Source of the DNA: Macrostomum hystrix
Taxonomy: Eukaryota; Animalia; Platyhelminthes
Reading direction: 5' to 3'
Assembly: GCA_950097015.1 (NCBI GenBank)
Contig: CATNEN010000002.1
Span: forward strand, 6,448,001 to 6,512,000
Length of the DNA: 64,000 nt
The position numbers and the translations under genes were made by a program. Below are positions 12,381-62,638 of the stretch, one piece after another. How positions within the stretch are numbered: position 1 is the stretch's first letter; each line of letters opens with the position of its first letter. The notes beneath the pieces were generated by a model. It did not search any database and had not been told where the DNA came from. It saw nothing but the letters and a program-made list of their open reading frames with translations.

Positions 12381-13164
12381 TTATTTTCAATAGCTTTTTC
12401 CAAATCTCGTTCTCCGTGAATAAAAGTGACAAAGGCAGCGGAAGTTGATTCATATTCGGTGCTTATCACGCACACTATTAAGAAAGCCCAATTTCATAGT
12501 AGAATCACTTGCATCACATACTACACATGAAGGCAAGGCTCTACATCTTGAAGTAAAAGGCATTCCGACCAAGCCAGGGGATGATATTTCATATGTTAAT
12601 CCAGCCGACACAGTGACGTCACAAGGCTGGAATGCCGGCCCTACAAACTGAAACCCAATTCTACAGTCTCTTGTCGTTGTTAATTTAGACAAAATTTGTC
12701 GCCGTTCTCGCATCGCCGAACTCGCTTTGGCTCGATCCCTGCAATTCCACTTCCCAGTTTCAAATCCGCGTCCTTAACAATGTCTTTAGGAGGCCGCTAG
12801 CTTGGCTTGCAATGCGACCATGTTAATAAGAAATCTTAATAGAAGAAGAGGAGAGCATTTAGGAGCAGATCAAAGAGCAGATTCTCTGGTTACAGACAAT
12901 GTTCACGGATGACATAACTCGAATTCTGGAAGACACAAAAATATGGCGTGCTTTAGCAATACATTAAAAAAGCAACAATATAAAGGGTGCATAATCGGTA
13001 AGCATTAGCAAAAATTGCATTTCTCAAAGCCAACTTCAAACTTATCTAAATCCGACACTCTCAGTTCTATTTCTCCTAATTTTAACAATATTGTGCTGTT
13101 TTTATATTTATCAACTCTATAACAAAACATATACTGTCATATATCTCTTTTCCTGTCGCTCAAC

Positions 13165-19647: not shown

Positions 19648-19918
19648 CATACATGTGCAACCTCCCAAATCTTAGCTGGCCTTGCGACTTAGTTTTTGCT
19701 CTCATTTGCGACTTAGTTCGTTTCATTGCTCTATTTACAACTTAGTTTGCTCTCATTTGCTCTCTTTTTCTCTCCCCTTTTTCTTTTTCTTCACGCCTTC
19801 CTTTTTGTCCCTTGGTCCCCCCTTTGATTTTTTTGCGCTTGGTCGATTGGTTTTTGCAACTTACCTTGCTTGGCCCTCGTTTCACCTGGCTGGTTCGGCC
19901 GGGTGTTGCGCATGTATG
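19648..19918. mobile_element. hAT-type MITE, copy 1
   Basis: 14-bp TIR CATACATG(T/C)GCAAC; 8-bp TSD AGTAAATA at 19640-19647 and 19919-19926. Confidence 0.88.
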
Positions 19919-20990
19919 AGTAAATAGCTATCCCAATAAGGCTTAATTTAGAAAAAATGAAATTATATGACATCTTATCTTTGGAGCCAGTCAGAGACAG
20001 GGATATGGCAGTCTTGCTATAATGCATAAATTTATTTCATATATCATACACTTATAATTTCATGTGCGAAATACTATTACTATGTTAACTCAAGACTTTT
20101 AGGCAATGAGGCATAGACAAAGGCTATATTTTCATGTTATATATTAAAGGTTGCTGGCTATTTTGGTGCCTGGTCTTGCCTTTTTTGGTACTTTTAATTA
20201 CTAATTAATTTAATTTAATTTAATTTAATTTTAATAATTTAATTTAATTTAATAATTTAATTTAATTACTTTTAATAATAAATTTATTTTGGCTATTGTC
20301 TAGCCCGTTATCACTTGTCATTATCATCAAAATGTATGGTACCAAATGTTATAGGTACAAAAATTAAAATGCCTATCAACAACCCTATTAAATACATTAA
20401 TGGGGTCAGAAGATTTAAAATCAAAATGACAGACTGAAAGACTATCTAGCTTGAATCCTTTTAGTCATGAAAATAATTATCCAAAACAGAAAAAACTGAA
20501 ATATTTAGTGCAGCAAAAAGAAAACCAAAGTTAATTTGTTAACAAACAGTACTGCCTAGATTTTAAAGCAGTGTAAATAGTGTAGTGTTTAGAATACAAA
20601 TTAGCATTTTAAGAAAAAAATGATGTAATGAATATAAATTTGCATAAAAATGATAAAATAAACATATAAAAGAATGACATTTAATTGACATAAAAGGGTG
20701 GCATATATATATTAAGTGCATATAGTAATGTATAATACTTATTACATATAATTTTATTTATCTGTCATATTATATTGCTTTAATTTTAATAAAAGTTTTT
20801 GGCTACCATATGGCTATACTATAGTAGGTCCTAGCTAGAATATAACATATGGTAGCTTGGAGTTGGACATTCAGTGTGCATAAATATTGAAACTTTAGCC
20901 TGCTCTAATCTAGGTCCAATCTAGGTTAAAGTAAAGAAGTGTAGCCACTGGCCTACTGCCATTATGAAAAATGGCTTCAGTCTATTAAAG

Positions 20991-22647
20991 GGTCCCAGGT
21001 AATTTCGGTGACAGTCATTTTGGTGACAGAATTAGTCAGTTTGGTGACAACTATTTTTGCACCTGAATATGCTGAGAAAACAGCCTTCCATGTTAACTAT
21101 GCACACCTATCAAATATTATGCTGAATTTGTTTTAATCAATGTTTGACATTGATGGCAGGTCCTTGTTTTTTTACTTTCGAATGGTACTTTCAAGTAGTT
21201 TGGATACTTTCTACTTGAATGAATAGCAAAATAGTTCAAGATGATTCAAACAGATGTTCTGTCTTTTCTCTGAATTGTTCATTATTCTGATTTTAAGTCA
21301 CATGTAGAATGATTGCAGTCAGTCTATATGATTAACTATGAAAAGGACAAGCAATCAGTATGTCAATCTTTTAGTTGGCTACTTGCTAAGCCTACTTCCT
21401 TAAAGTTAAGCTTGCATTATTGAGTAATTCTGCCAGAATTCTAGCACATGAGCTAATTTTGGCCAAATTTGAGCAGTATACAGACTGGATAAATCCGTCT
21501 CTGTAGGAAAAAGGAAAATTCACTAAGCTCTCCAGTGTTGCACACATACATGCGCAACACCCAGCCAACCCGGCCAAACCGGCCGGGTGAAATGAGGGCC
21601 AAGCAAGGTAAGTCGCAAAAACCAATCGACCAAGCGCAAAAAAATCAAAGGGGGGACCAAGGGACAAAAAAGGAAGGCGTGAAGAAAAGGAAAAAGGAGA
21701 GAGAAAAAGAGAGCAAATGAGAGCAAACTAAGTTGTAAATAGAGCAATGAAATGAACTAAGTTGCAAATGAGAGCAAAAACTAAGTCGCAAGGCTGGCTA
21801 AGATTTGGGAGGTTGCGCATGTATGGTTGCACAACATATGCATGGCAGCATGCTTGCTATGGTTTTAGCTAGTTGAATGACAGTGAAATTAAATGTGAAT
21901 AAGTAGCTTAATGCCAGTATCCAGTTATATTGCAGTTGCAGTTCTCTGAAAACAAATATATTATACTTGTACATATTCAATTAGGAACCAATAACTATTG
22001 AAACTATAGACTACTCATTAAATCATTTAATTTAAAGTAAAACCCAGACTCAAGCAGAGCAATGCAGCTTCTACCATATTTTTCTTTACAATTTTTCTTT
22101 GTCCAGGTTTTTACCTTAAAGGTATAAATGCGTAAATATTAGGACATGTGCATTCAAATTAGATGCTCATAACTAACAATAGTTAAATATAATACAAATT
22201 TCAAGCTCAACATGAGGTTCTTCATATTGCAGTGAATACCAAACTATAACAATTTGCCTTTCTAATGCTTTTTTAAAACTAAGGGGTTTATAGAAAATTT
22301 AAAGGGGCATGAGAATTTTATGGTTTTTACAATTTTCTTAGTAATGAGAATTATCGCGAAAAAAGCATGTGCTATATAAAGAATATTAAAAATGTAAATT
22401 ACTTTCGCAATAAAAAAGTGAAACGGCACACCAACTTATTAGGTGGTAGGCCCAGTAAATACTTCCTAATAATACTTAATAGGTATGTGTAGGCCCAAGT
22501 TCACTTCACATGGAAGGCTGTTTTCTCAGCATATTTAGATGCAAAAATAGTTGTCACTGAACTGACCAATTCTTTCACAGAAATGACTTGAGTTGTCACC
22601 GAAATGATTATCACCTAAATGTCTTGTCACCAAAATGACCTGGGACC
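20991..22647. mobile_element. Non-autonomous Mutator-like (MULE) element
   Basis: ~110-bp imperfect TIRs starting GGTCCCAGGT with repeated GGTGACA motifs; 9-bp TSD CTATTAAAG at 20982-20990 and 22648-22656; no ORF. Confidence 0.8.
21545..21825. mobile_element. hAT-type MITE, copy 2 (inverted relative to copy 1, nested in the MULE)
   Basis: TIR CATACATGCGCAAC; 8-bp TSD GTTGCACA at 21537-21544 and 21826-21833. Confidence 0.88.
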
Positions 22648-38952: not shown

Positions 38953-39520
38953 CAATCTCTCACCTGTCATTAAACCCGTGGCTTAGTACAAAAGCAGTCA
39001 CCCAGTCTGTTAAAAATGTGGGCATGAAGCAGCAGCTGTCAGTGCATGCACCCGACTGTGCTCAGGGCGGTGAGAAGTTTCCCAACAAGCCTCGCGTGGC
39101 TCCCGTCTCACCTGAATTTTGTGTCGAGCAGAGCTGCTATTCTGCAATCCTTGAGCTGCTTAGCCGTGATGAGCTACCGCGCGTGCCTCTGTGATAATTC
39201 CGACGACAATTTTTGTCTCGTGAGCTCCACAGTGCTCGACAGGCTGTGCTCAGGTCCCGGGCTTGACTCAAAGAAACTGTCCGCGTGTAACAAACCTATC
39301 GATCAGGGATGGGATCAGTATCCTAAGGAGTGGGGATTCATGCCAAGTCATGGGGATTCATGTCTGGCTGAGACAAAGCCCGACCCCAGTCAGGCTCGGC
39401 GGTCTATGATTGGCTAGAGGCCTGAAATCGATGCGTTTTCTGAACCTCTCGATTTCAATCCAGTTTCGTGTGTGATTTGAGAAAGTCGAACAATGAATAT
39501 GCTTTTTAACACACTGACAT

Positions 39521-42229
39521 GTCCGTAGCCGCCTTCCAGCCGCACCGAAATTTTAAATGAGTGCCCCAGGTGTAATTTTAATAAAAATAAATCACACATG
39601 CTCTTAATTTATTGCCCCAAAACATGTTTCGCATGGTCGATGCTGTTTCTATGAAAATCTGACAGTGAAAGTTGGCTTTAGGGCGGCTGAAGGGCGGCTG
39701 GAAGGGGGCTAGAGAATATTGCTCTGTATTGGCGCAGTAAAATTGTGCCCCAAATGGAAAAAAAATTGAATGAAGTCTTAACTTTAATATGCACAATAAA
39801 CTTTGGTTGATTGGCTTTTATTTATTAGAGAAGTGTGACCTTTAGTTTGAAATTCAGCATTCCAATAGGTAAAAGCGTGCCCCAACCATTTTCTTGACTA
39901 ACGGCTAATGCCCCAATGCGGTAAAAAGAAGCAGGGTCAAAATTTTACTGTATATGTAAATTTCTGTACATGCCCCACAATTTCCAAATGAGTGGCGAAG
40001 TGAAATAACTTGATTGTCACTCAGACACCAGTCATTACGACTTACAGTTGAGATTACGACTTTGCAATCGTAAAAAATAAATTCTAACTTGTTGCAAAGC
40101 TTGAGCAACGTGCTCGATCTGATGCAGACCTATATGGCTATATGTCACGTTTTAATTTTAGTTTTCCTAGTTTCTAGTTTTCAGGTTTTAATACCAGTTT
40201 TCACCGACAAGTTTTTAAACTTATCAGAATGTAACTGCCCCACAGACTGTTTAATTGGCAGCAAAAATTAAGAGCTCTTAGTCTTAGTCTTGTTACAAAT
40301 ATATAATTTATATCACTCATGCATAATTTATATCACTCATGCAGGTCATGGACCAATACTAATAGACTAATGGACCAATTCATAAATTACTATCAATGTG
40401 ACAATGCCCATGTTGATAGATATGTAATTGTATGTGTCCTTTAGAAATATTAAAAACTGGCATGACAATTGTCACTTTAAGATTGTAATCAAATCACTCA
40501 ATATATTATATAATCTATATCTATGCCTATGTATATTAACACTCAGTAATAATAATATTTCAAACAATAATAGCTAGCTATGGCTATATATACAGAATTC
40601 TACATATGCACCTTCTTATGAATTATGTCAGGACATATGACTCAAATTTATTCAGGATATGATGCATGCAACTAGAGGAGCTTTATATTAAATCCAACTT
40701 TATTGTCACTTTTCTAAACAATTAACAAAGTAATAATAATACTAGGCCTAATAGCTAGACTAGCTATTGATATTAAAAAATACAAAAGTCTAGTAGCTAT
40801 TTACAATCTATTTTCTATTTTCTATTTCTATTCTATTTACAAGTTAGGCCTTGATGCCTTACAAGCTAAGTATTACCATTAGCTTCGATATAGTTAGAAC
40901 GCTTCTCTTTTACTCATTCCTAGCTAACTAACTTGGAAAAAATAAGTTCAATAGGCAAAACTTTTAGTCTTTTTTTAATTAATATACATATTGCTATGGC
41001 ACATTTTTAATACACTTGTTTGAGTTACAGGTCTGGAATGTAATATATTCTTTAAATCAATAACAAAAATAATTGTATCAATCTCCAAATTATATTTGAT
41101 AGATAACTCATATTCACAAAATCTGTCTCTGTGTATAATATACACTCGACATCAAGTGCTTCCATGTTAGTTTCACTCGTGCCTTTTAAGTTTTATATCT
41201 CAGTAATGTATATCATATAAACATGATAATTCATGTTTTTCAAGTTTCTTCTCAATATCTGCTAGTTCCACTCATGTCCTTTCATATCTGAGTAATGTAT
41301 ATCATATAAACATGATAATTCATGTTTTTCAAGTTTCTTCTCAATATCTGCTACTTCCACTCATGTCCTTTCATATCTGAGTAATGTATATCATATAAAC
41401 ATGATAATTCATGTTTTTCAAGTTTCTTCTCAATATCTGCTACTTCCACTCATGTCCTTTCATATCTGAGTAATGTATATCATATAAACATGATAATTCA
41501 TGTTTTTCAAGTTTCTTCTCAATATCTGCTACTTCCACTCATGTCCTTTCATATCTGAGTAATGTATATTATATAAACATGATAATTCATGTTTTTCAAG
41601 TTTCTTGTCAATATCTGCTAGTTCCACTCATGTCCTTTCATATCTGAGTAATGTATATCATATAAACATGATAATTCATGTTTTTCAAGTTTCTTCTCAA
41701 TATCTGCTAGTTCCACTCATGTCCTTTCATATCTGAGTAATGTATATCATATAAACATGATAATTCATGTTTTTCAAGTTTCTTGTCAATATCTGCTACT
41801 TCCACTCATGTCCTTTCATATCTGAGTAATGTATATCATATAAACATGATAATTCATGTTTTTCAAGTTTCTTGTCAATATCTGCTACTTCCACTCATGT
41901 CCTTTCATATCTGAGTAATGTATATCATATAAACATGATAATTCATGTTTTTCAAGTTTCTTCTCAATATCTGCTAGTTCCACTCATGTCCTTTCATATC
42001 TGAGTAATGTATATCATATAAACATGATAATTCATGTTTTTCAAGTTTCTTGTCAATATCTGCTAGTTCCACTCATGTCCTTTCATATCTGAGTAATGTA
42101 TATCATATAAACATGATAATTCATGTTTTTCAAGTTTCTTCTCACTATCTGCTACTTCCACTCATGTCCTTTCATATCTGAGTAATGTATATCATATAAA
42201 CATGATAATTCATGTTTTTCAAGTTTCTT
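39521..42229 (+). repeat. Left terminal inverted arm (~2.71 kb) including 12 x 89-bp units (~41195-42270)
   Basis: Reverse complement of 48293-50733; ACATGATAAT recurs every 89 bp from 41221 to 42200. Confidence 0.95.
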
Positions 42230-42496
42230 CTTAATAGCTGCTAGTTCCACTCATGTCCTTTCATATCTGCGTAATAATTCATGGTTTTCCTGTTTTTTCT
42301 TATCTTCAATGCTAGGATTCACTTAACCAAGTCCAGTATTTGCTTAGTAGAGTTTGTTTAAGTAAGAAAAAGTAAAGTAAATAAGAGTGTACACTTGTCT
42401 TTTATGTCACTATATTTCTGTCAACGCTTTGAAGTTATTTTCGATGTTATGGATGCATGTTTTTGCATGTAATAAAAGTTATATAATTTATTTCAG

Positions 42497-43459
42497 GCTT
42501 TCATTAACGATCCTTTTTCGGTCTTTGAGCAAAAAGGAGAACTGCCCTTACCCTTTCCCGACAGGGAAGTGGTCGTCGGCATCAGACTAACAGCGACTTG
42601 TGTTCGTGTAGCTGCTCAGATCCTAAACATTCCACTGTCCGGTTCTCTACTTCGAAGGGCTCATGGAACGAATGTCAATTATATTTCGGAAAATGGTTTA
42701 GCTCTGGCCTACCGTGATGGTGTAGCAATTTTTCGACATAGAAAAAAATCATCGAATTGTCACCAAGACCATTCCAAGCGAGCGAAAGCGGCTGCTGCCG
42801 GAAAGGAGTGGTTGAAACATAATGGTTGGAAGTTGGAAGAAGAGAGTTCGCAGCTTTCAGCTGTGATTGCAAAGCAGCATGTAACAAAGGCACTTGATCA
42901 TCTGGAGTTGGCTGTATCCGTAGGTCCTGATGAAATACGTAGTATAATTAAAATATCTGTTGCGTGTGTGCATCAGGTAAAAAATGTGATTGATTCTGCT
43001 CAATTGTCTACTGCGAGGGGAGCAGAATTTGAGCAGGGAGAGTCAGAAGTGGAAAAGCAGCGAGAAATGGAGAAGCAGCGAGGACTGGAGCAGCAGCAAG
43101 AGCAGGAGAAGCAGCGAGAACTGGAGAAGCAGCGAGAACTAGAGAAGCATCGAGAACTGGAGAAGCAGCAAGAGCAGGAGAAGCATCGAGAACTGGAGAA
43201 GCAGCGAGAACTGGAGAAGCATCGAGAACTGGAGAAGCAGCGAGAACTGGAGAAGCAGCAAGAGCAGGAGAAGCATCGAGAACTGGAGAAGCAGCGAGAA
43301 CTGGAGAAGCAGCAAGAGCAGAAGCAGCGAGAGCAATTATCTTTATCGAGAAAGCGATCGGCAAAATTTGTGAACGCTGACAAGAAAGACGGAAATACGT
43401 CAGCCAAAATAAGTCGCACAAGTAGGCCTTTGCGCCCAAGACAAAAGTTCATCAACTAA
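42497..43459 (+). CDS. Transposon accessory ORF2: possible Bro-N-like N-terminus plus E/K/Q/R coiled-coil repeats and basic tail; start exon not resolved
   Basis: Acceptor tttatttcag at 42496 opens a 321-codon frame; repeats based on GAGAAGCAGCGAGAACTG. Confidence 0.6.
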   Translation, partial: AFINDPFSVFEQKGELPLPFPDREVVVGIRLTATCVRVAAQILNIPLSGSLLRRAHGTNVNYISENGLALAYRDGVAIFRHRKKSSNCHQDHSKRAKAAAAGKEWLKHNGWKLEEESSQLSAVIAKQHVTKALDHLELAVSVGPDEIRSIIKISVACVHQVKNVIDSAQLSTARGAEFEQGESEVEKQREMEKQRGLEQQQEQEKQRELEKQRELEKHRELEKQQEQEKHRELEKQRELEKHRELEKQRELEKQQEQEKHRELEKQRELEKQQEQKQREQLSLSRKRSAKFVNADKKDGNTSAKISRTSRPLRPRQKFIN

Positions 43460-44478
43460 ACTTATGTTGCTAATTGCAGGGACGAGAATAATTTGATGAT
43501 TTTTGCGAACTTGATGAATGCGCTTTTGTGCAATCGAAACTTGTGAATTTAACTCAATAGCTCAATGTCAATTAAGGGATGTACTCCTTATGCTTCATGT
43601 TTATGCGTACGAGTTGCCATACGATCTTACGCAGGAGATAGCGGACCCCTGATACCAATAGTACTACACTTTTTTATTTAGCTTTCGCTTTGATGTGTTT
43701 TGATATACGAGCGTACAATGTTTGACGACTTGATCGTAAGGTGAAATGTTTAACCGTGTGAGCTCTCCATTATTATATTCTATTCTATTCTATAGTACTC
43801 GTATATTATGTTTATGACTACTGACAAAACGAATAAACGAGTCGGACCGTCAAAATCTGATTGGAAAATATTCAGAACCGGAACTTGAATTTATCTTATG
43901 AACTTGCCTTATGCATTTGGGCCCGATGGTAAGTTCAATAATGATCAACACCTTGGGCATACAAGGTAAAACAATACATACAAGGCGCACGAGCGTACTA
44001 CATTGCTATTTAATAAAAAAGATAGTAAAATCAGGCGCTATCAAGCACAATAAAGCCTTCCTATCCTAAGAAGTCATGCCAACGGATTCATAGTCAGTTA
44101 AAAGGTTAATCGATTAATGTGCAGAATGTTTCGTGTGCACCCTGACTAATCAATCCTGTTTATAAGAGATATTAAAAATATTGTAGGAACCGATGATCTA
44201 GTGGCAACGACAAACTACTTAACAAAACGATAACTGGATTAGTAGGATTAGTAGCCGCAAAAATTATGATACATATCTGGGTCATTTATATAGAAAAGAA
44301 AGTAAAAGCAGTGATGTGACGAAAAGAATAAGAAAAGGCGCAGAGACAAAGACATTTTGCCATTTAAGCAGGGTGCGGCGGGAAGACGCCTTCATGTGGG
44401 TGCATGGTATGACATCAGACATGAGTAGGCACTGGTAAAGCGAAAACCCGTAGCTTATCCAAGCACTAGCGAACATAT

Positions 44479-47400
44479 TTAAAACAAAGCGTACATCGCC
44501 AGGTTTAGGCGACCTACATTTCGTTGCCGTCGCAGCGCACCACTGGTAGTCCCGAGGTCGTCATAGTTTAGGACGCTACCATCGTCAGAATGTATAGTTG
44601 CTACCCAGTGCGCACGCTCTGCTTGAAAGTATGTCGAGCAGAACAGTCTGTATCTATAAAAAATTTAGTTTTACGTAACATAATGATACATTTAATTTAA
44701 TAAACAAGTTACTTATTGAACAAAAATTAGTGTCTATTTCTAGTAAAGTCAATATCTAGAACCGCAAATGTGTTCTCCGTCTGACAGCATAAAAATTGTA
44801 CTCGTAGCTTTACTCGGACTACTCAACGCTTTAGGGACTACGGCCTTACAGGTACCCTTGATATTTTTTACCAATAAGTAAAATAATAGTTATCGACAGT
44901 GTATATAAAAACTACAAGTACTTGACACTTCCTTTTTCGGGTCCAGCACAGCAGCCCTGCATTAGCTAGGTGACACAAGTAATCAGACGATAGAAGAGTA
45001 CATATATAGAGTGCAAGAACTCACCGAGCAGGGCTGTTTCGAAAGGGAGTTACCTCTCGTTCTCCCAACGAGACTCGAACAGTTCTATCGACAGAGTCGG
45101 GTACAGCAACAACAAGCAGCGGAGGCAATTCTGAGGAGTACGTCGGTGGCAATACATCTCGCAAACTGTTGCAGTGGCAGCATTCCCGAACGCCAGACTC
45201 ACGGAAAACAGTGCAGATAAAGCTGTAGGGTGACTCGATTGGCCCTTCCTCGTGTTGGATTACAAGCCCAGAAAAAAATGATTCCAGTTGTCGATGGCGG
45301 CAGGCATCGTTGCGGCAGATGCTTCTTATCAGGAATAAATGGCTATTTCCAAGTAACTCCAGAACTATGTCCAGTTCGCTGCTTTCGAGATTTCCGTCAA
45401 CGATGCTGCTACCGTTTCGCCGCCAACGCAGAAAGCCTTTGCGCCAGAATGACTCTGTTTGTACTATCAGTGTAGCACGGGCATGCATGGCTTCTTGATC
45501 GGTGCGGCTAGCGGTAGCTTCTCTGCAGTACCGGCCTAGCCGATGAAGATCTTGAAGTCGAGACGCCAAAATGGCTTCACGGAATGTCTCGCGATCTCTA
45601 TATGCAAATGCAATACCAGTGAGGAACCCATCAACAGTACAAGTGTTGTGCAGCATTACTGTTACGAGTTTCCCATTAAAAGGTACACTGGTCGAGCGGC
45701 CACCATTTTTTAGAAGAGTAAATTGTTCCTGTGCATGATTTGTTAGGTCTCGAAGGAGAACACGCGTCGTAGCTGCAGTGTAGCGTCCTGAAGTGACCCT
45801 TCGTTTTTTATTAACTACCTCGGAGCTCAGCGAAGTTTCTTCAGTCGCTTCGTGGTCATTTAGCATTGATGTGAAAGGGTTCCTGAAAGAACAGGAGCCC
45901 TGTAAGTTAGAAATACGAGCATCGCCATCGATTTCAGGCTGATCGGGGTGACTGGAACTGGGATTCTCTGACTGCTCGTCGGTGTGACTAGAAGTCTCTG
46001 GCTGCTCAGGGTGACTGGAACTGGAGTTCTCTGACTGCTCGTCGGTGTGACTAGAAGTCTCTGGCTGCTCAGGGTGACTGGAACTGGAGTTCTCTGACTG
46101 CTCGTCGGCGGTGTGACTGGAAGTCTCTGGAAGTTCCATAAAGATCCGATGCAACCCCTGCAGGAACCGACTTTGGTTAGCCAAGAAGTTCCTCATGGAG
46201 CTGTCCCGACCCCCGTGAAGCAGGTTTTTAACGATATTCATCCAGAGCTCCGTGTGGCCTTCCGTGAATCCCTCAGCGTCACGAGAAACACTTTTGAATG
46301 CACCGCTATTGGACGCAGCATATCTCACGGGATCCAGCATGATACCGCACCAAAGTGGCAGGTATGGCATCACAACATTGGTAAGTTTACCAGCGAGACT
46401 GGGGCAGTAGTACGGATTCGGATCTGGTGTCAGTTCACTCTCACTTTGAACAACTTGTGCTTCGGCACTAGCTTTCACCTCATTGTGCAATGCATCCGCT
46501 AGATGGAAGAATGGCGAAGCTCTCTTCAATGTCGTATCCGGCATTACGTACATGAAACTTTCGGGTGGAACGAAAACTCCGTCTTCAAGTTGATCTGCAG
46601 CGGCTGCGTGCAGAAGAGCGAGTGACGAGTCGACACTCCTCCGGGATGGGCAAAGCAGAAGCCGTAGAAAGCTTTTGTACACTTGCTGTACCTGGTGCAA
46701 GCTGGTGCATCGTAGCAAGGCACCGAAGAAATGCTTCCAACCATTCCTGGCTTCCGGATTCCTGCAATTCGCCACATCAGGCCAATCACAAAACTCGCGC
46801 ATGATATGGCTCCGGCCGAAGCCGATCAACGTAAATTTCTGCAGTTCTTGATAGCTTAATTTAAACGATAGAACGGCATAGCAGTGCCGCAGAAAAGGAA
46901 TGATTTCCATCCCGTGAATGCCCATAAGGAGAGCCCGCAAAGTAGGCAAATTAAAATCGAGGGTGACCTGAGCCACGCGAAGATTTTTTACTGATAATCT
47001 TGCTGCCGTGATCCAGGAGTCAAATACAAACTTTAAAGTTGTTCCCGTCTGCGAAGACGATAAAAGTTCCATAACGGCAACGGGTTGCGCTCCAGTTTGA
47101 GGATGACGCAGTACCACAGCGTGGTAGTAAACATCCTTCTGCTGACTGTCTTTGGGTTTTGAAATAGGCGCTCCGGTTGAATCCATGCCCAGTACGATTG
47201 GCTTACTGTTCGCTTGCATCGAACGCAACACTTCAAAAGCACTGTTCAACCAAAGAGGCACGAATTGGGGTTCCGATGCGCCAAATTGCACACAGACATT
47301 CCTTGCGTAAGCAGGTTGCATGCTCTGTCCTTGAATAATAAGATCCAGCAGAGTATCAGACGACTGCCGGTCCTGATGTCGTTGCCTACTCGCAGCAATT

Positions 47401-48195
47401 CGTAGTACATTAGGAGATGGCAACAACCGAGTGTCCTCATCTGCTGCGATTTCTGCCCTTACCCGCGTGGCACTTGAAGAGCAAACTCTTTTGGCCAATT
47501 CAATACGTCGCTCCCCACATAGAGGACGTGCCTTGGTAGCATGCTTAGTAGGATTCGTTTTGACTTCAAGCGAACAGAGCAACCTGTTTCCAGAGTGGAG
47601 CACTTTCAAACGGAATAGGCCAGTGCAACCATCAACATTGCAGTAAACATCTGCAGATATGTAGCCTGCATTGTGCTTATGCCTGCGCATACACAGGGTG
47701 CACTTAAGTGATGAAGAGAACGACAGAAGAACATAGTCGTGCCAGCTCTTTTTCAGATTGCCACTACCATCGAAAACGTGGTCAATGTCAACGAAGCTTT
47801 GGTGTAATTGCGTTTCAGCTGTTGTACTGCTGGAAGACCTGAAATCAAAACGAAGAAGGCGAAATTATAGATGACTATGTATAAGAAAAGCCAAAGTAAG
47901 AGCGCATCAAAAAAAGCAATACTTACGCTGTATTGCTCGGTATCTCACTCAAAGAATATCCGGTGATGACAGCCTGAACTTCAGCGATGATATTGCTTCT
48001 TCTGAATTTGTCATAGAGCCATCTGCGACTTGATTCGTTAGTGCCATCAAGACCAAGTAAATCAGCAAGTCTCTGAAGTATGCCATTCGCATTACGCCAA
48101 GTAGGAATCCCAGCGGAAAACTCAGCAACATCAACCTGACCAGATACAATGACCTTCTTGATGTCTTCCAGGGTCACTGAGCTAGTGAAATTCAT
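44479..48195 (-). CDS. NOF-like MULE transposase fused to a USP-like peptidase, ~1085 aa; exons 48195-47927, 47838-45025, 44653-44479
   Basis: MDSTG (D, 47181-3), YYHAVV, TLDFN (D, 46956-8), GRSH at the CxxH position, NPYYCP, YLPLWCG, HTELWMNIVK (E, 46248-50); NTCTVD Cys box; AHWVATI..YDD His box; two phase-2 gtaagt/gtgagt introns give 3258 nt in frame. Confidence 0.85.
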
Positions 48196-48292
48196 GGTAA
48201 GTGACAATATCGACAATCACTTGAAAGGCCTGAAATGGAATAATCATAGAGGCTTTGTTTGCATCCTTGAGTGCTAATATGATACACATCAT

Positions 48293-50733
48293 AGAAACTT
48301 GAAAAACATGAATTATCATGTTTATATGATACACATTACTCAGATATGAAAGGACATGAGTGGAACTAGCAGATATTGACAAGAAACTTGAAAAACATGA
48401 ATTATCATGTTTATATGATATACATTACTCAGATATGAAAGGACATGAGTGGAAGTAGCAGATATTGACAAGAAACTTGAAAAACATGAATTATCATGTT
48501 TATATGATATACATTACTCAGATATGAAAGGACATGAGTGGAACTAGCAGATATTGAGAAGAAACTTGAAAAACATGAATTATCATGTTTATATGATATA
48601 CATTACTCAGATATGAAAGGACATGAGTGGAACTAGCAGATATTGACAAGAAACTTGAAAAACATGAATTATCATGTTTATATAATATACATTACTCAGA
48701 TATGAAAGGACATGAGTGGAAGTAGCAGATATTGAGAAGAAACTTGAAAAACATGAATTATCATGTTTATATGATATACATTACTCAGATATGAAAGGAC
48801 ATGAGTGGAAGTAGCAGATATTGAGAAGAAACTTGAAAAACATGAATTATCATGTTTATATGATATACATTACTCAGATATGAAAGGACATGAGTGGAAG
48901 TAGCAGATATTGAGAAGAAACTTGAAAAACATGAATTATCATGTTTATATGATATACATTACTCAGATATGAAAGGACATGAGTGGAACTAGCAGATATT
49001 GAGAAGAAACTTGAAAAACATGAATTATCATGTTTATATGATATACATTACTGAGATATAAAACTTAAAAGGCACGAGTGAAACTAACATGGAAGCACTT
49101 GATGTCGAGTGTATATTATACACAGAGACAGATTTTGTGAATATGAGTTATCTATCAAATATAATTTGGAGATTGATACAATTATTTTTGTTATTGATTT
49201 AAAGAATATATTACATTCCAGACCTGTAACTCAAACAAGTGTATTAAAAATGTGCCATAGCAATATGTATATTAATTAAAAAAAGACTAAAAGTTTTGCC
49301 TATTGAACTTATTTTTTCCAAGTTAGTTAGCTAGGAATGAGTAAAAGAGAAGCGTTCTAACTATATCGAAGCTAATGGTAATACTTAGCTTGTAAGGCAT
49401 CAAGGCCTAACTTGTAAATAGAATAGAAATAGAAAATAGAAAATAGATTGTAAATAGCTACTAGACTTTTGTATTTTTTAATATCAATAGCTAGTCTAGC
49501 TATTAGGCCTAGTATTATTATTACTTTGTTAATTGTTTAGAAAAGTGACAATAAAGTTGGATTTAATATAAAGCTCCTCTAGTTGCATGCATCATATCCT
49601 GAATAAATTTGAGTCATATGTCCTGACATAATTCATAAGAAGGTGCATATGTAGAATTCTGTATATATAGCCATAGCTAGCTATTATTGTTTGAAATATT
49701 ATTATTACTGAGTGTTAATATACATAGGCATAGATATAGATTATATAATATATTGAGTGATTTGATTACAATCTTAAAGTGACAATTGTCATGCCAGTTT
49801 TTAATATTTCTAAAGGACACATACAATTACATATCTATCAACATGGGCATTGTCACATTGATAGTAATTTATGAATTGGTCCATTAGTCTATTAGTATTG
49901 GTCCATGACCTGCATGAGTGATATAAATTATGCATGAGTGATATAAATTATATATTTGTAACAAGACTAAGACTAAGAGCTCTTAATTTTTGCTGCCAAT
50001 TAAACAGTCTGTGGGGCAGTTACATTCTGATAAGTTTAAAAACTTGTCGGTGAAAACTGGTATTAAAACCTGAAAACTAGAAACTAGGAAAACTAAAATT
50101 AAAACGTGACATATAGCCATATAGGTCTGCATCAGATCGAGCACGTTGCTCAAGCTTTGCAACAAGTTAGAATTTATTTTTTACGATTGCAAAGTCGTAA
50201 TCTCAACTGTAAGTCGTAATGACTGGTGTCTGAGTGACAATCAAGTTATTTCACTTCGCCACTCATTTGGAAATTGTGGGGCATGTACAGAAATTTACAT
50301 ATACAGTAAAATTTTGACCCTGCTTCTTTTTACCGCATTGGGGCATTAGCCGTTAGTCAAGAAAATGGTTGGGGCACGCTTTTACCTATTGGAATGCTGA
50401 ATTTCAAACTAAAGGTCACACTTCTCTAATAAATAAAAGCCAATCAACCAAAGTTTATTGTGCATATTAAAGTTAAGACTTGCATCTAATTTTTTTCCAT
50501 TTGGGGCACAATTTTACTGCGCCAATACAGAGCAATATTCTCTAGCCCCCTTCCAGCCGCCCTTCAGCCGCCCTAAAGCCAACTTTCACTGTCAGATTTT
50601 CATAGAAACAGCATCGACCATGCGAAACATGTTTTGGGGCAATAAATTAAGAGCATGTGTGATTTATTTTTATTAAAATTACATCTGGGGCACTTATTTA
50701 AAATTTCGGTGCGGCTGGAAGGCGGCTACGGAC
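48293..50733 (-). repeat. Right terminal inverted arm (~2.44 kb) including 9 x 89-bp units (48293-~49060)
   Basis: ATTATCATGT recurs every 89 bp from 48312 to 49024. Confidence 0.95.
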
Positions 50734-52274
50734 ACGAGCTTTTCTAAGAAAAAATACTTTAACGAAAAACTGCTTCAGAAAATTGAATGCCATCCAGCAC
50801 TCCACATGCCACTCCACTTGAATTTCTGTAGATGCTTCTTCCGAAAGCATCTTTTTCAACTCCGCAGTGAATTTTCAAAGGGATCGCATACGAGTCAATG
50901 ACTGCCAGCCGGTTTTTTAGTCAATTTAGTAATACGAGTAAATAACTGCCAGCCACAGCCCAACTGCCATGCGTCTCAGTGAATGCAATTCAAGCTTGGT
51001 TAATTCCGAATACAAAACTCAATGGAAAATTGGCAAGCATTGACTGGCAGCTGCGGGACCAAGGACCACTAGTAGATAGATAGATAGATACTCTACTTGA
51101 GTAGTCCGTGTTAAAACCTAGCCATAATTGGCCTTAATTAAAGAACGAAGCGAAACTGTGTCAGTATACTATTTGGGATTGGTTGTGAGAGCAGTCTAAG
51201 GCTTATTGCCTCTCGCACCATGGTCTCTGAGTTCTATTTAAAGCAGAAAGCAGTACTACCACTGGAGCAGTATTTAAACTAAAAAGTTTCCTCTTTGCAC
51301 CCGCCAATACTGGCCAGCGGTCAGCGGGCCAAGAAGCTTCAAGAGAACGCGCTGCGAGAGCGGCTGGAGGAGGCGAAGAGGCGTCATCTAGAAGCTGCGG
51401 CCAAACGACACCATAAGGAAGTGTCCGTGGAGCTGCTGCCGCCAGTCAGCAACCAGGATTCCGAGGTGCAGCAGCTGGATCTGATTGTTATCGATGCGAG
51501 CTGCCAGCCGACGGACCTGCTGCTGGACTTGGATTGAACTCGAGAACTTCGTGAAAGCGAAAAGTGCGAATGTGGTTGCTAAACAGAAAAATCACTGTTT
51601 ATTCTGTTTGGCACTGTACAACTCTAGAGGTTCATTCAGAGTCCAAAGGATCATAACAAGAATATAAAAAGTGCTGTAGGAGAGTTCTTGGTAATATCTA
51701 ATTAATGGCTTTAAGGAGTTTGACCTCGATTGTCCAACTCATAAGTCATTGTCTTTTGCCGTTAAATTACGCCACACGGATCGCAGATAGGATCATACCG
51801 TTTGCTAACACTAAAACATATTGCATAACAAATTTATGTTGATGTTTGTATATTCAGATATTTATATATTAATAAATTATAGTTATGTTTATGTTAACAA
51901 AACGGAAATTTTACGTTGTTTAATTTTGTATAAAAAAAACTAAAATGAAGCACAAAAACAGATGCAGAAGTAAAAGTATGCAAACGCATACACAATAACG
52001 GTTTTAAGAATCTTTAAACTTCTTGAATTAAATTCTTGGCCTCAATGCCTCACAGTTCTAAACGGCTATGGAACGTAAAAAATAGCATTAGCAGTGCAAA
52101 AAAATGTTAGAAAAAAAATTATACTATAAAATATCGCGCATGTTGATCCAGACTCAAATAAGATATGACCGTCAGCACTGGATTCTGTATATATAATGTT
52201 TCTTGTGTGCACAAGGTAGTTGCATAAGTTTGTCGTACGAGCTAACCCAAAATATTAGCGATCGTGTACAACGT

Positions 52275-52799: not shown

Positions 52800-55700
52800 T
52801 AGTAATAATAATAATAATAATCTCACGCCCCGCGCCGACCACAAGTGGCCAAAAAAAAGGGGGGGCATCAAATCGCGCGCTTCAGGGCAAGGTCTCTGAC
52901 GTGCTTCACGCCGGCTGCCTGGCTGGGTGCTCGCGCATCATCAAAAAGACGGTCGATGTAGCGAGCCGTTCGTCCCTGTCCGCGCCTGCGAGGTCCCTGC
53001 GGAGTCCACAGCAGGACTTCCTGCAGCGGCTCTGAGCAGTAGGCTTCGGCCCGGATGACATGCCCGGCAAGCCGCAGACGTCGCTTGCTCAGCAGGGCAG
53101 AAGGCCGCGTCAGGCGCGCTCGCTGGTACAGGGAGTCGGTCGTCTCTCTGCGGCGAGCGCCGAACGCGGCACGAACCAGAGCCGCATGCGCCGCGTCGAG
53201 CTGCCCCTCGAGCGCCCCGGTCAGCGTCCAGGTCTCAGCATTGTACAGGAGGGCAGTCTCGACAACAGCCTGGAACAGCTGGGACCTGGCGCTGTCCGAC
53301 AGGGCCTCCGAGAGCAGCACCGCCCGAACAGATCGAAAGGCGGCCCAGGCGGCCTTTCCGCGCCGTCTCGCCAGGTCGTCGCTCACGTCCGGCACCAGCC
53401 CGCCGAGGTAGAGGAACTGACGGCACTTCGGAGCACCGTCCCAGGGGCATCGCCGTCTCGGAGTCGGAGTCGGATCTCGGCGGGTAGATCGTGCGGCACC
53501 GTCAGCACCTCGGTCTTTTTGGCGTTGATGACGAGGCCGACCCTCGCAGCCGCCGCAGTCAGGCCATCCAGCAGCCTTTGGGCGCCTTCGGCCGTCGTAG
53601 ACAGCAGGGCGAGGTCGTCCGCGTAGCCGAGGAGGGACAGTCTCTTCTCCGGGTGTCGCCGACTGGTGCGCCTTTGCAGTAGAAAGCCGTCCTCTGCGGT
53701 CGGCAGGCCGATCCTGCACACCCAGTCCATCAGCAAAACAAAGAGGAAGGGCGCCAGAGTGTCACCCTGCAGCACTCCGGAGGTCGTGCTGAACAGGTCC
53801 GACGGTCCGTCTGGCGTCGCTACTGCAGCGGTGGTATCCTGGTACAGCGCCATGATGGCGGAGATCAGCTGCTGCGGTACGTTGTAAGCACGGAGCACGA
53901 GAGGCAGCGCGCCGCGGGCCACCGAGTCGAAAGCCTTGAGGAAGTCAACAAAGATGACAACTAGGCTTGACTGGTGGATGCGCGCTTCCTCGATGATGCG
54001 GCGGAGGGCCAGGATCTGCGTCACTGTGCCACGACGAGGCCGGAACCCGTTCTGCTCGTACCGCAGGTACGGGTCCAGCACAGGCTGTAACCGTGCTAAC
54101 AGCACCCGGTTGAAAAGCTTCGCAGCACAGGACATAAGCGAAATCCCACGATGCTCCTCCAACCGTGTGGTGCCCGGCTTCTTCGGGATGCCGACGATGT
54201 TGGCGTGGGTCCACTCGCGGGGCGCGGCACCTCCCGCAAGGACGCCATTCATCACGCGGGCCACCTCCGTGGCAACCCTTGTGACTCTCAGCGCCTCGAC
54301 GGGGACTTCATCCGGACCGGGGGCGCGGCCTCCCGGTGCCTTGCGAGCGAACTCCACAATGTCGGTGCTGGTCACTGGACTGGTGTCGAAATCTTCCTGC
54401 CGCGGCAGCGCCACCTCGGGGGGCAGCGGCATCTCGTCCGGCAGAGTCGGCGGTGGCGCGTTGACAATGGCGGCGAAAAAGGTGCGCAGCTCGTTTCTGC
54501 GTTTCTCTGCAGTGTCGCCGGTCAGGTTCAACGCTGCCTTCCTCTTGCGACCGGTGAGGGCGTTTACGACCGGCCAAATAACTCTGTTCTGCCGTTCAGG
54601 CCTGACAGACGCAACTGCTCGGATCGCGTCATCAACAGCGGATTGCTGTCGTCTCGTGTAGGCGTCTGCCAGGGCTTTCTCGGCGTCAGATGTTGGTCGC
54701 CTGGCACGTCGCAGTTGCTCGACTGTGCGGCGGGCTTCTCGGACCTCCGAGTCGCTCGCCCAAACCGGAAGCTGCCGTGACGCGGGCTCCATTAGCGGCA
54801 GAGTCTTGGCAGCGGCAGTGGCGATAGCAGAGCTGATGGTGGTGTAGTCTGGCGCCTGCGCTGATCCCAGGGCAGTCGCAAAGGCGTACGCAAACCTGCT
54901 GCGGGTGCCTTGGTCTTGCAGGGCGAGGAAATATCTTCTTCTGGGGCGTTTTGGCGGCCTGTACAGCGGATCGGAAAGCCGCACGTCGCAGTAGAGCAGG
55001 CGGTGATCGGACTGGATAGCCAAGGGTTCCACGGTGTCGCAGTTCTTTAGCCGACTGCGTTCACGGTAGCGGACCCGCACGTGGTCGAGCTGCGCCAGGC
55101 GGGTCGTGGTGAAACGGCCTCGTGCGTTCCGCCTCCTCCGCTTGCAGCCGGCGAAGGTCGCCAGCCGGTTGGGCGGTTTGCGGAAGCGCGTATTGGCCGA
55201 CACCAGGTCGAGCCTCGCCATCAGGTCCGCTAGCGCGGCGGTGTTGGCGTTCTGGCGTGGCGACACAAACGGGCAGCGCTGGGACCGTGACGCGACGGCA
55301 TTGAGATCACCAAGCACCACCATCTCGAGCTGCTCCGACAGGAACTCGTAGAATTCCTGCGCCTCCTGCTGATGGGCAGCCGTGGGGGCGTACGCACAGA
55401 ACAGCCGCGCATTGCGGCGACGTAGCCTCACATCTACGCGCAGCAGTCGGGCTGACAAGCTGATGCAGCAGACGCTCTCGCGTAGTCGTGGCCCGACGAG
55501 CACGCCGACTCCTCCGCGGCCTCTGCTGTCCGCTGACGTGTAGTGCAGCGTCCAGCCGGCCCCCAGATCCTCACGGTGTAGTCCAGGCTCGGCAGTGACT
55601 GACACCTCCTGCAGCATGACGAGGTCCAGCCGCAGGTCGGATGCCAGCTGCGCGAGCATGCCCCTTCTCCAGGCGGACTTCAGCGTTCGGCAGTTGAAAG

Positions 55701-56013
55701 TGGCTAGCCTTAGAGCGCGATTTGTAACAGCTGGGGCCCGGTGTTGGTGGGCCTCTCGGTCCCCGGCGCCACCCGGAGGAACCGGTTGTTCGTGGGTCAG
55801 CAGATGATTGTTGGCAGCAGACCGGCGGAGGTGGCCTTTCGTTCGCCCTCGCCGATTTCGTTCCCTTCGCCTCTCAATGCGGCGTTGGGTGCTTCGCTGT
55901 CCACGCCGGCCTCCCGTCCTGCCGCACTTGGCAGCCGCAGCACCGGGGCGCGGCTCTCCGTGTTGGCCGAGGCAAGCGCTGGAGGCTCCAGCGTCACCAG
56001 GAGGCGGCGGCAT
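52800..56013 (-). mobile_element. RTE-like non-LTR retrotransposon (APE endonuclease + RT), one frameshift near 53432, (ATT)n tail
   Basis: APE motifs ATFNCRTL, MLQEV, AYAPT, GDLNA, LDHV, SDHRL; RT motifs APGPDEV, RGISL, QNGFR, FVDFLKAFDSV, GVLQGDTLAP, YADD; C-terminus continues in ORF 52868-53719. Confidence 0.93.
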
Positions 56014-58461: not shown

Positions 58462-61400
58462 ATGCTGGGAGACCGCATTCAAGACACCAGCCAACCATGC
58501 AGCCAAGAGTTTGTGCAGGCGGTGATTACAGGAAATGCTGACGTCATCCGAAAGTGTGTCAAGGCTGGAATGAGCGTCAATGCACTCTACAATTACCAAG
58601 GTATTACGATACCCGCTCTGCACTTGGCTTGTTTCTTAGGGCAGGCTCGGTCCGCAAAGTGTTTAATCGAAGTGAACGCTGACGTGGATTTGCGCCTTGA
58701 ACTTGCGCCTGCTTCTCCACTTTACACAGCCTGCCATCAAGGTCACACTGAAATAGTTGCCATGCTCATCCATGCTCAAGCTGATGTCAATTTAAGTTGC
58801 TGTGGCAGCGGCATCTTTCCGATCTACATCGCTGCCCAGAACGGTCATGCTAATGTTGTAAAACAGCTGATCAGTGCGCAATGTGATTTGGACGCAAGCA
58901 TAGTTAGCGGAGGTTCAGCTCTCCATGTTGCGGTGCAGAATGGTCACCAAGAAGTTGTTGACCTGTTAATCAAGCTGCAAGCTGATGTCAATCTGCTGAG
59001 TAGCTCAGGGAATACTCCACTCTGCATCGCATCCCAAGAAGGTCACCATCAGGTTGTGAAATCCCTCATCTGCGGACTAGCCAACACTTCTTTAGAAGGC
59101 TCAACACTATCACCGCTGACTCTTGCGTCTCAGAATGGTCACCAAAGAGTCGTCGACCTGCTCATCGAGGCGAGAGCAGAAGTAAATTTTCGCGGAAAAA
59201 CAGGAAGGGCACCATTGCATGCTGCATCGGCCAGCGGTCATCAGCAAGTTGTGCAGTCGCTCATCAATTCAAACGCTGATGTAGATCTCCTAGCCCCACA
59301 GGGCTATTCATCTCTACACATCGCTTCTCGCAATGGCAAGGAAGAGGTCGTCAGGCTCCTCATCCGACACCAAGCCAATATCGACCTTCAAACTCCAGAA
59401 GGGCTTTCACCTCTGCACGCCGCGGTACACTCGGATCACTTTAATGCGGCAGAATGTCTGGTCAAAGCGAATGCTGACGTCAATCTTCAATGTAACATGG
59501 GGTACTCAGCCCTCTATATTGCTTCTAACAGAGGAAATTGTCAAATAGCAGAACTACTCATCAAAGCACAAGCCGACGTCAATCTAGAATCGAAAAGAGG
59601 TTACTCACCGCTGTGCGTTGCCACGCAGAAAGGCCATCATGAAGTTGTAAAATTGCTCATCAGTGCTCAAGCCGATGTGGATGTCCAGACTAATCTGGGA
59701 CATCATCCGCTTTACATCGCAGCGCATCACGGCTTCGACACACTGGTGGATTCACTCGTGAAAGCGCAGGTGAATGTCAATCTTCCGTCGATGAGCAGTT
59801 ACTCAGCGTTGCATATAGCTACGCAGCGAGGTCACTATCGAGCGGTTCGATCGCTTTTGGCAGCAAAAGCTGACGTCTTTCAGGAGACAGCCAGCGGCGA
59901 GCGAGCTGTGCAGATAGCACTGAAAAGAAGGAATGCAGACATAATAAATCTGCTTGATGAAGACAATTTCAGCAAGCAGCTCGCGTCGCAACATGAAGAA
60001 ATCCCATTTGGGATTTGGGATCAGCACAGAAATCATGATAGGATTGTAACTAAAATGTGAGCCCTGAGATAAGTTGCTTGCAATTATATCAAACCTATTA
60101 AACCAAAAAAGTAACTTAAATAAAATATGAGTTGGTAAAGTTCGAAGTAACTTTTCTAACCTACAAACAAGGGTTGTGAACTAGCGTGTCTAAATTCAAA
60201 AAAATCTTTCAAAGCTCTTTTATCCCTTCCCTGCTGATCTTCTCTTTAGAGACGTCCCTGGCGACCATGAGCTGAGCGAGCAGCTGCACAATGCACTCAC
60301 TCAATCAGGATTCGTGGAGTCTAGGGTCGCACTGCAGATTGCGGTGGCCGATGTCCTGCAGGACATTCAGAGGAACCGGCAGCACCGGCAGCTTCTCGGA
60401 GGGCTGGGGAAACAGCTTGGATACTTTGAACGGCCGAGTTGACATTGAATCGGATATCGACATGATGCAGCTTGTTCAAGGCCAGCTGCATCATCTGAAA
60501 GGGTTCTGCAACTGCGCCAATGCGGGCGTGCTGCGCGACTACAACAATGGTCACATTGTCTGCCCCGGCTTTGGTAAATAGCTACGCATGTACTTTTATG
60601 CACTATTCAAATCCGATTTTGTCAAGAATTTTGCAATAAAGTTTTTTTTCTGAAAATCTGGTTACAATCAGGAGTTAACAGTAGAATGACTAAGTAGAAT
60701 ATTTCAAATACCCACATTTTCATTTTTCTGTATCTCCCAAACTAGTGAAAATCAAGAGAACGGGCTTAACATTTCCACTCTATCCGATGAGACGACTTCC
60801 AGATTCACAAAACATCGGCATCGTTGACATATTTTAAGGATTGTTGGCAGCTTCTCGGAGGGCTGGGGAAACAGCTTGGATTCCCGTCGGGGTGTCTGGT
60901 GGCAAAAACCACCAAAACTGGCAAAATTTGACTTGAAGAGATTGCACAAAGCGATGTTGTTTATCGAAGACACGTGTCACCAGTATCTTCGATAAGAATC
61001 GGCTGAATATCTCGACGATCCTGACGTCGGACGGCTTTGAAAGTTAGTTGGTCGTAAACGGCGGAAAATGGCGTGTGACTTTCTACTGTTAATGCTTCTT
61101 ACGCTACGTTCTTACTAAACATTTTTTTATTGAACATTATGCTATTTAAGACAAAGCATTTCATGATTGCAGCATCCAGTCCCGCACTGCCGACCGCTGG
61201 CTGCGCCCAGAGACCAGCAGTAGACAGAGTGTCAGCTGATCGGTTGTGCCAGTATCCGCCTATCGCGCCTCTCCAATCAAGCCGACTCGCCAAGTCGAAC
61301 ATTCCGGAGTCCGTGCTGCAGTCACTCCAACAGGATCTCACCAGTCCTTCAACGCCGTGTCATGTGGTGCGCGCAGCTTCTCCTGGTCGAGGAGGCGAAG

Positions 61401-62638
61401 AGCTCCGCGTGAGCACCAGCTTCCTCGAGAAGCGAATGCTGAGAAGCCTCAAAACCCTGCAAGGTCAGATGTTCGTCACACTCAAGTACCTGGTCAAGAA
61501 GGTCATCAGCCACCAAGATGGGTTCGGTGAGCAGGGCCTGAAGCCATATCACATGAAGACCATCACATTCCGAATGGTGGAGAAGACACTGCCTGAGGAG
61601 TGGAAGCCACAAAATCTCGTGAGTCTGGTTAGGAGATCCCTGCAGATGCTGCTTGACAGTGTCAAGAGTAACCGTACTGACGACAATCTTCATGGCCGGA
61701 TCATGAAGCACTTCTTCCTGAGCGATGCCGCTCTGTACCTCAAGGGCGTCGGTCAGAAGGACATAAGCCAGACTATGAGCAGAATCTCAGAAATACTGAG
61801 AGTTGTCATTGAATGGCTGCCTTACTTGATTTTGGGGTACATCAGGAAACTCAAAGCAGTGAGCGACAATGGCTTATTCTACTTTCACCCTTTCCAAGTC
61901 CTGCCTGAACTGTCTCTAATGCCAGTGACACAGTCCAGCAGTTCCGAGTATCACGAGATCTACGATATCGTAGGAAGGTGCTTGTTGCATCTATCAGACG
62001 GTGCTTGTGGCATGAAACTCCAAGAGTTGCTCAACGACATTTCAAAGATTCCAGAGTGCGCATTCACAACACGAGAGGCCCTCAGAGCGCTGGCTTTGCT
62101 CAAGTTCGGCGATAGAGAAGCGGCCACGAGAGTCCTAGACGAGTACAGGGGACACGGAGTTAGCTGGGGAATATTGTGGCCGTCCGCAAGGTTGGCGTCA
62201 GAGGCCAGCATGGGAATTGTGCGCGAGCATCTGCAATTCAACGACTCAACTTGGAAGTTCTGCTTCAATTTTTCCAATCGACCAAACTTCTGCAACGTGC
62301 CAGCATCCATAGCTGGATTTTTTCCAATCGAAGTAATAGCTTGCAAAAACTTATTTTACATTAACTTTCATGCATTGTTGTGGGCCTTGCGGTTCGAGCT
62401 GCAGACAGAAAGTCCAACGACTTTGCTAGCCTGGATTGAAGGCGTCGCGAACGACACTCACCCTGATGCACAGGAACTGCTTGTTGCTGCCCTGAACTCT
62501 AGGAATGCCAGGCACGCTCGCATTATTCTAGATAGGCAGAGAGATGTACCAACGAGAGTGCTCAGCCGCTTCATCCGAATTCTGAGAGAGTACCGGAAAG
62601 ATTGGCGCCTACCGCCATCGCTCAACTCGCAATTCTGA
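58462..62638 (+). CDS. Ankyrin-repeat (~14-15) + cGAS-like/Mab-21 nucleotidyltransferase (ANK-cGLR); exons 58462-60056, 60250-60573, 61173-62638; frameshift near 60370-60385
   Basis: AT|gtgagc donor joins ttag|A in frame to DVPGDHELSEQLH; GSFSEGW...SDIDMM motif; G|gtaaat joins cag|CA in frame to AVDRVSA, CHVVRA, LRVSTSFLEKRML, PYHMKT, HFFL. Confidence 0.8.

Follow-up and report, generated by a model that had tools for sequence, protein, structure and literature searches.

The window, by which we mean the whole stretch of 64,000 nucleotides of Macrostomum hystrix DNA that was analysed, contains an 11.2-kb foldback element (39513-50734) flanked by inverted repeats, and within it a gene whose mRNA joins a transposase and a cysteine protease in a single reading frame. 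The encoded protein of ~1100 residues consists of a DDE transposase, a flexible linker and a protease with a predicted USP fold. The explanation that best accounts for the whole, and to which we assign a probability of roughly 0.6, is that of an autonomous-type Mutator-like element whose spliced transposase carries a USP-fold isopeptidase acting at the element. On the basis of the predicted fold and of conservation, the domain quite probably works as an isopeptidase that acts on ubiquitin or a ubiquitin-like tag; that the active protease, tethered to the transposase, would act on the transposase itself or on proteins at the element is the view that we favour on balance. The coordinates of all relevant features are collected in Table 1.

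Table 1. Features of the foldback element and of its two genes (positions within the window)
Feature	Position	Strand	Remarks
Left terminal inverted repeat	39513..42275	+	tip ACTGACATG at 39513; inner end formed by 12.2 copies of an 89-bp unit (41191-42275)
ORF2, second, convergent gene	42497..43459	+	from an AG acceptor in phase 0; 18-nt repeat coding for a Glu/Lys/Gln coil; basic tail
Transcribed region between the two genes, with their 3' untranslated regions	43400..44478	not given by contigs	
Exon 3, coding part	44479..44653	-	Y-x-L strand, catalytic His, Asp-Asp, terminal Tyr strand, stop
Catalytic Asp	44560-62	-	exon 3; followed by Asp 44557-59 (YDD 44557-65)
Catalytic His	44608-10	-	exon 3
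Intron 2	44654..45024	-	371 nt, GT-AG; joint in 4 runs from 4 studies
Transposase exon 2	45025..47838	-	Cys/His-rich N-terminal part, DDE core, 63-bp repeat linker, KKRR, protease part 1
Protease part 1	45025..45689	-	N-terminal beta-hairpin, N-T-C-x-x-D, thumb helices, zinc-finger Cys pairs, P-P-L-L-V-V strand
Zinc Cys pair C-x2-C	45180-82, 45171-73	-	
Zinc Cys pair C-x4-C	45315-17, 45300-02	-	
Catalytic Cys	45639-41	-	in MLHNTCTVDGFL; box N-T-C-x-x-D
Basic KKRR patch	first Lys 45807-09	-	exon 2
DDE core residues	D 47181-83, D 46956-58, H 46806-08, E 46248-50	-	exon 2; all four present
Intron 1	47839..47926	-	88 nt, GT-AG; joint in 4 runs, phase checked
Transposase exon 1	47927..48229	-	starts at spliced-leader trans-splice acceptor (AG 48231-48230); start codon 48195
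Right terminal inverted repeat	48293..50734	-	89-bp unit present 8.7 times; tip shortened by its last 7 nt

An earlier note on this DNA had placed the His box of the protease in a separate, spliced exon, and this was borne out: intron 2 is skipped exactly in the contigs, one of the runs concerned (X15) yielding contigs at least 99% identical to the window, and the M. lignano protein PAA68264.1 at NCBI (1106 aa; P0003 below) has the identical junction of exons 2 and 3. The donor (CG/GTGAGT at 45025/45024) and the acceptor (TATAG/A at 44654/44653) fit in phase (2 + 1) and, like the catalytic Cys, the His and the Tyr-Asp-Asp, lie where that note had put them. Intron 1 is skipped as well in contigs of four runs; the four runs are not recorded as RNA, and both skips are nevertheless of the GT-AG type. 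The X15 contig moreover carries, at 48230, 21 extra letters that are absent from the window and identical to the 3' terminus of the spliced leader of M. lignano (sequence from PMC8629364), so that it represents a processed mRNA. The transposase transcript occurs in several RNA data sets; it receives a leader by trans-splicing and loses two introns by cis-splicing. The terminal AUG of the leader would open a frame of 16 codons (48229-48182, minus strand) that overlaps the transposase start out of frame, with a spacing between the two starts that is identical in three M. lignano copies; such an AUG could damp the translation of the transposase.

The transposase belongs to a family that was detected only by a full HMMER search with exon 2, which recovered 254 relatives. 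The Mutator-type catalytic residues D, D, H and E are 94-100% conserved in 108 aligned cores of relatives, and the Cys of the CxxH motif after the second Asp occurs in 77% of the family and is a Gly in the window protein. The Pfam MULE profile did not match this transposase and gave sub-threshold matches (E 0.002-0.04) in four of nine relatives. The Mutator-like features that are present are a 9-bp target duplication (in the M. lignano copies), long terminal inverted repeats and the DDE triad. The claim that the protease is fused to a Mutator-like transposase is supported, with one spliced frame and all DDE residues in place. By architecture alone, the element can be likened to Rehavkus and related foldback Mutator-like elements, which also combine a 9-bp target duplication with long inverted repeats containing minisatellites, although their repeats are listed as 26-400 bp (PMC6446971) and those in the window are far longer (2.4-2.8 kb). 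A PHD finger like that of Rehavkus is found in many relatives of the transposase, whereas the window protein has no PHD match. Like maize MuDR, in which two convergent genes begin at the inner ends of the repeats, the window element has two convergent genes that begin there.

The two arms of the element differ by 9 mismatches over 2442 nt. Three M. lignano copies, with 3-5% divergence from the window in the non-coding parts, end in ACTGACATG and each is surrounded by a perfect 9-bp target duplication. The element is a young foldback Mutator-like DNA transposon of the autonomous type. The transposase gene is intact in one of the M. lignano copies (L002); another (L001) has a stop within the protease part (12924-12928) and the third (L003) has frame changes in the transposase core (8839-11758). 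In the window copy, with its truncated right tip, neither a target duplication nor a displaced tip was found; the missing 7 nt and the missing duplication (50728-50745) suggest a small deletion or rearrangement after insertion, and because its right end is damaged this copy may be immobile. The second gene, ORF2, is open in all four copies, with a dN/dS of about 0.5 that indicates a weaker constraint than on the transposase, and gave neither a significant Pfam match nor an ESM Atlas match. It has no ATG at its start, and the AUG of the leader would fall in frame; leader trans-splicing may thus supply its start codon.

For the analysis of the whole protease domain we used the M. lignano protein P0003, whose domain departs from that of the window by two conservative substitutions, and the window exons were searched one by one. 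The AlphaFold model of the domain (42 sequences; pLDDT 90.1, pTM 0.87, as compared to a pLDDT of 36 from the single sequence) has the thumb-fingers-palm fold of the USPs (papain clan CA), with Cys17 predicted to open a helix (17-32), His237 to open a strand (237-243) and Asp253 to follow the strand 249-252. The best Foldseek match of the model was USPL1 (E 2.9e-10), which resembles the domain at a TM of ~0.5 and an identity of 13-15%, and the VIA structure comparison ranked USP35 (Z 14.7) and USPL1 (Z 14.6) over residues 13-279, with the inactive USP fold of PAN2 at Z 13.4 and the coronavirus papain-like proteases at Z about 10. The profile of the family recovered USP-clan chains only among the 60 PDB matches listed (best USP8, E 9e-8; USPL1, 4e-6). 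The USP-like fold that had been proposed from the order of the motifs is therefore supported by the predicted structure. An Ulp1-like identity of the domain was rejected, as box order and fold differ. Viral USP structures were no nearer to the domain than cellular ones, and no relative was found in viral contigs.

The catalytic residues are strongly conserved throughout. Among 150 relatives listed, ~35 carry the C-terminal N-T-C-x-x-D motif, many of them ending at introns. All 12 full-length domains (12-22% identity) share the Thr-Cys, the Asp at +3, the His, the Tyr that precedes the acidic pair and three of the zinc cysteines; the fourth of these cysteines is present in all 10 gap-free rows of the alignment. 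The Cys-His-Asp order claimed earlier is intact, the Cys and the His occurring in 12/12 and a D or N as third residue in 11/12. When the Macrostomum protein and the four relatives nearest to it were left out of the profile, the sole significant matches among 2488 stop-to-stop pieces of the window were exon 2 (E 9e-14) and, at E 0.004, exon 3 (next E 3.5); the possibility that exon 3 is a chance frame was rejected because this profile matches exons 2 and 3 alone within the window. Compared to the M. lignano copies, the domain shows 1-3 amino-acid-changing and 4-5 silent differences, and the resulting dN/dS of 0.08-0.19 (p 0.011-0.024), based on 5-8 changes among near-identical and non-independent copies, points to a domain under purifying selection.

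The domain shares with the canonical USPs (C19) the thumb-fingers-palm fold, the order of the boxes, the zinc finger, the His box, the (F/Y)DD and the terminal Tyr strand, but it differs around the catalytic Cys, which lies in N-T-C-x-x-D on a beta-hairpin instead of in the canonical G-x-x-N-x-G-N-x-C-[YF]-x-N-[SA]. It has the invariant Asp at +3 and no Gly-x-x-Asn, and at -5, five residues ahead of the catalytic Cys, a Met takes the place of the oxyanion Asn of canonical USPs, a residue that is not conserved in the family; the window copy also lacks the Gly that precedes the catalytic His. Pfam UCH did not match the Macrostomum domain and matched five of 17 relatives (best E 2.4e-6), Peptidase_C98 stayed at 11.6-13.4 bits, below its cut-off of 27, with weak matches to the His-box exon (E 0.06) and in relatives (E 7e-6), and single-sequence searches of Pfam, PDB and a word index with the domain gave nothing significant. 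The assignment as a C19 deubiquitinase in the earlier note held for the fold but was too narrow, the domain not being a C19 USP in the strict sense. Since the canonical Cys box and the UCH match are missing and the nearest matches are C14orf28 and USPL1, the term deubiquitinase is no more than likely to apply. The candidate substrates would be ubiquitin, SUMO or another modifier; both ubiquitin and SUMO are eligible, since USPL1, the nearest solved structure, is a SUMO enzyme and the family swaps USP and Ulp1 tails. As an isopeptidase the protease would remove ubiquitin or a ubiquitin-like tag, either from the transposase or from proteins that bear such a tag at the element and where it inserts, and would thereby lift degradation or a repression that depends on SUMO or ubiquitin. 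The transposase and the proteins at the element are the likeliest targets, since the fusion keeps the protease attached to the very enzyme that binds the ends of its own element.

The closest structural relative lies outside the canonical USPs. In the ESM Atlas, with predicted models on both sides, the best match was a cluster of the vertebrate protein C14orf28 (TM 0.78 over 260 residues at 3.1 A; feature score 0.96), ahead of unnamed fungal clusters (TM 0.67) and of named USPs (TM at most 0.63). The match with C14orf28 spans residues 3-279, including the N-terminal hairpin, whereas the USP matches start at residue 12-13; both proteins therefore appear to share an N-terminal beta structure that the USP matches leave out. 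The Cys region of C14orf28 may also resemble the N-T-C-x-x-D box. PMC10318531 places C14orf28 (DRIP1) among the papain folds related to USPs and describes its catalytic residues and an additional beta-sheet, and no enzymatic activity of it was reported in the literature searched. It is a stand-alone host protein of 310 residues in a mostly chordate Atlas cluster, whereas the Macrostomum domain is fused to a transposase. Among solved structures USPL1, a SUMO isopeptidase of peptidase family C98, is the top match by Foldseek and tied top by VIA, even though the Pfam C98 score is below cut-off. Judged from the predicted models, the domain belongs to a C14orf28-like branch of the USP fold, and this hints that C14orf28 may have come from such a transposon; no literature naming C14orf28 together with a transposon was found. 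Unnamed Basidiomycota clusters in the Atlas (283, 333 and 680 aa) reached a TM of 0.67 or a feature score of 0.96 to the domain.

The hosts of the relatives include the sea cucumber Holothuria leucospilota, the fire ant Solenopsis invicta and a springtail. The combination of transposase and protease is common to elements of flatworm, ant and sea cucumber and to a metagenome contig; the ant locus (L006) and this contig (L008) both contain inverted repeats with tandem units, the transposase core and protease pieces that end in a His-box exon, and the protease domain is fused in frame in every complete element examined. The 108 transposase cores carried three kinds of tails: a divergent USP (31), a USP with canonical Cys box (12) and an Ulp1-like protease (15), with the remaining 50 showing none, in many cases because of truncation. 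On an unrooted tree of 55 labelled cores, made after exclusion of three long or redundant rows and of all unlabelled rows, the three kinds are interspersed and the labels need eight changes; a single clade of the carriers of the divergent USP was rejected (AU test, p 4e-7). That relatives fill the same slot with a canonical USP or an Ulp1 suggests selection for the removal of a tag and not for one particular enzyme. We tentatively propose, at somewhat less than even odds for the proposal as a whole, that an unnamed branch of USP-fold proteases is widespread among the foldback Mutator-like elements of animals, that C14orf28 is a domesticated copy of this transposon domain, and that this transposase family swaps three kinds of ubiquitin/SUMO proteases at one position. 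The relatives with a canonical USP Cys box include P0031, P0038, P0074, P0109 and P0121; several have an N-terminal PHD finger and most end at an intron shortly past the Cys box. One further relative (P0035) is filed at NCBI in a bacterial metagenome bin (Sedimenticola sp.) and is probably animal DNA within that bin.

Other functions could be envisaged for the protease. The least unlikely of these is that it is mainly self-processing, cutting the fusion within the linker to free or activate the transposase in the way of viral USP-fold papain-like proteases: the linker between transposase and protease is a low-complexity Ser/Glu repeat, the coronavirus enzymes share the fold, and the same role has been proposed for MULE transposases that bear an OTU domain (PMC1702500). 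Against this, the domain has kept a full fingers subdomain with four conserved zinc cysteines, which in USPs holds the body of ubiquitin, the alternative tails (USP, Ulp1) all come from families of ubiquitin-like isopeptidases, and an unsystematic look at the linker revealed no conserved cleavage motif. Next in line, and likewise improbable, is that the domain catalyses little or nothing and serves to bind: by docking on chromatin or repair proteins modified with ubiquitin or SUMO it would aid the targeting or completion of insertion. The absence of the canonical oxyanion Asn and of the Gly-His fits with this, as does the structural similarity to inactive USP folds such as that of PAN2, but at 12-22% identity no positions are better conserved than the Cys, the His and the acidic residue after it, and a dead enzyme would hardly be expected to keep them.

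Less likely again is an action on host proteins away from the element, for instance on defence factors in germ line or stem cells, in which the fusion would only ensure co-production. For proteases derived from Helitrons, PMC9741609 suggests such a role in the male germ line, and the presence of the transcript in several RNA data sets is compatible with it; yet the in-frame fusion is kept in all complete elements examined, and the element has in ORF2 a separate gene slot for factors that act in trans. Finally, the protease could be a captured fragment of a host gene without a role for the element, like the cargo of Pack-MULEs, as MULEs readily capture host sequence (PMC6446971, PMC8277862). 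This is very improbable: the same architecture recurs in the elements of different hosts, the splicing is in frame, the domain appears to be under purifying selection, and the conservation of the catalytic residues across phyla largely refutes it.

Proteases of this kind are known from several transposons. The earlier note had described the protease cargo of MULEs as mainly Ulp1/C48 in plants. Ulp1 tails occur on Mutator elements of plants and also of hydra and lancelet (PMC2836005), OTU domains on MULEs of Medicago (PMC1702500), OTU or Ulp1 on Ginger1 transposases and a peptidase C19 on a transposase_11 of Trichomonas (XP_001314237.1; both PMC2836005), and USP/UCH domains in Helitron HLE2 elements (PMC11417382). 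One protease domain carried by a Helitron is a deubiquitinase by biochemical and structural characterisation (PMC9741609). In the MULE and Ginger1 proteins, too, a cysteine protease from a ubiquitin/SUMO-processing family forms the C-terminal part of a DDE transposase, and the same role is proposed for it, but Ulp1 and OTU are other protease families than the USP fold found here. The Helitron HLE2 and Trichomonas elements are DNA transposons with a USP-type domain as well, but of other superfamilies, and their domains are recognised by the standard C19/UCH profiles whereas the Macrostomum domain is not. A USP on a transposon thus has precedent, and the novelty is smaller than had been implied; no report of a Mutator-like family with a C14orf28-like protease was found in the literature searched, which covered few subscription journals and did not include Repbase. 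Searches for NOF/foldback with peptidase and for MULE with USP also gave nothing, and the words protease and peptidase are absent from a survey of MULE diversity (PMC6446971). The domain has probably been overlooked because standard profiles miss it and gene calls usually cut it at introns.

DNA transposons have repeatedly acquired proteases of the ubiquitin/SUMO system. The exchange of three kinds at one position points to selection on function, and the family sets the uncharacterised vertebrate protein C14orf28 in a context and offers it a possible origin. Macrostomum is a model animal in which RNA interference and transgenesis are available, and as the element is young and expressed in it the role of the protease is testable.

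Elsewhere in the window we found a minus-strand open reading frame for the endonuclease and reverse transcriptase of a non-LTR retrotransposon (53383-56013; GC about 65%), a plus-strand ankyrin-repeat open reading frame followed by a Mab-21/cGAS-like one (58462-62638), and a long tandem array of 13 bp (39-bp higher-order) with an extreme GC skew (1-2000). Inverted repeats of ~190 nt around 1.8 kb of AT-rich DNA (19648-21825) likely represent a small non-autonomous DNA transposon.
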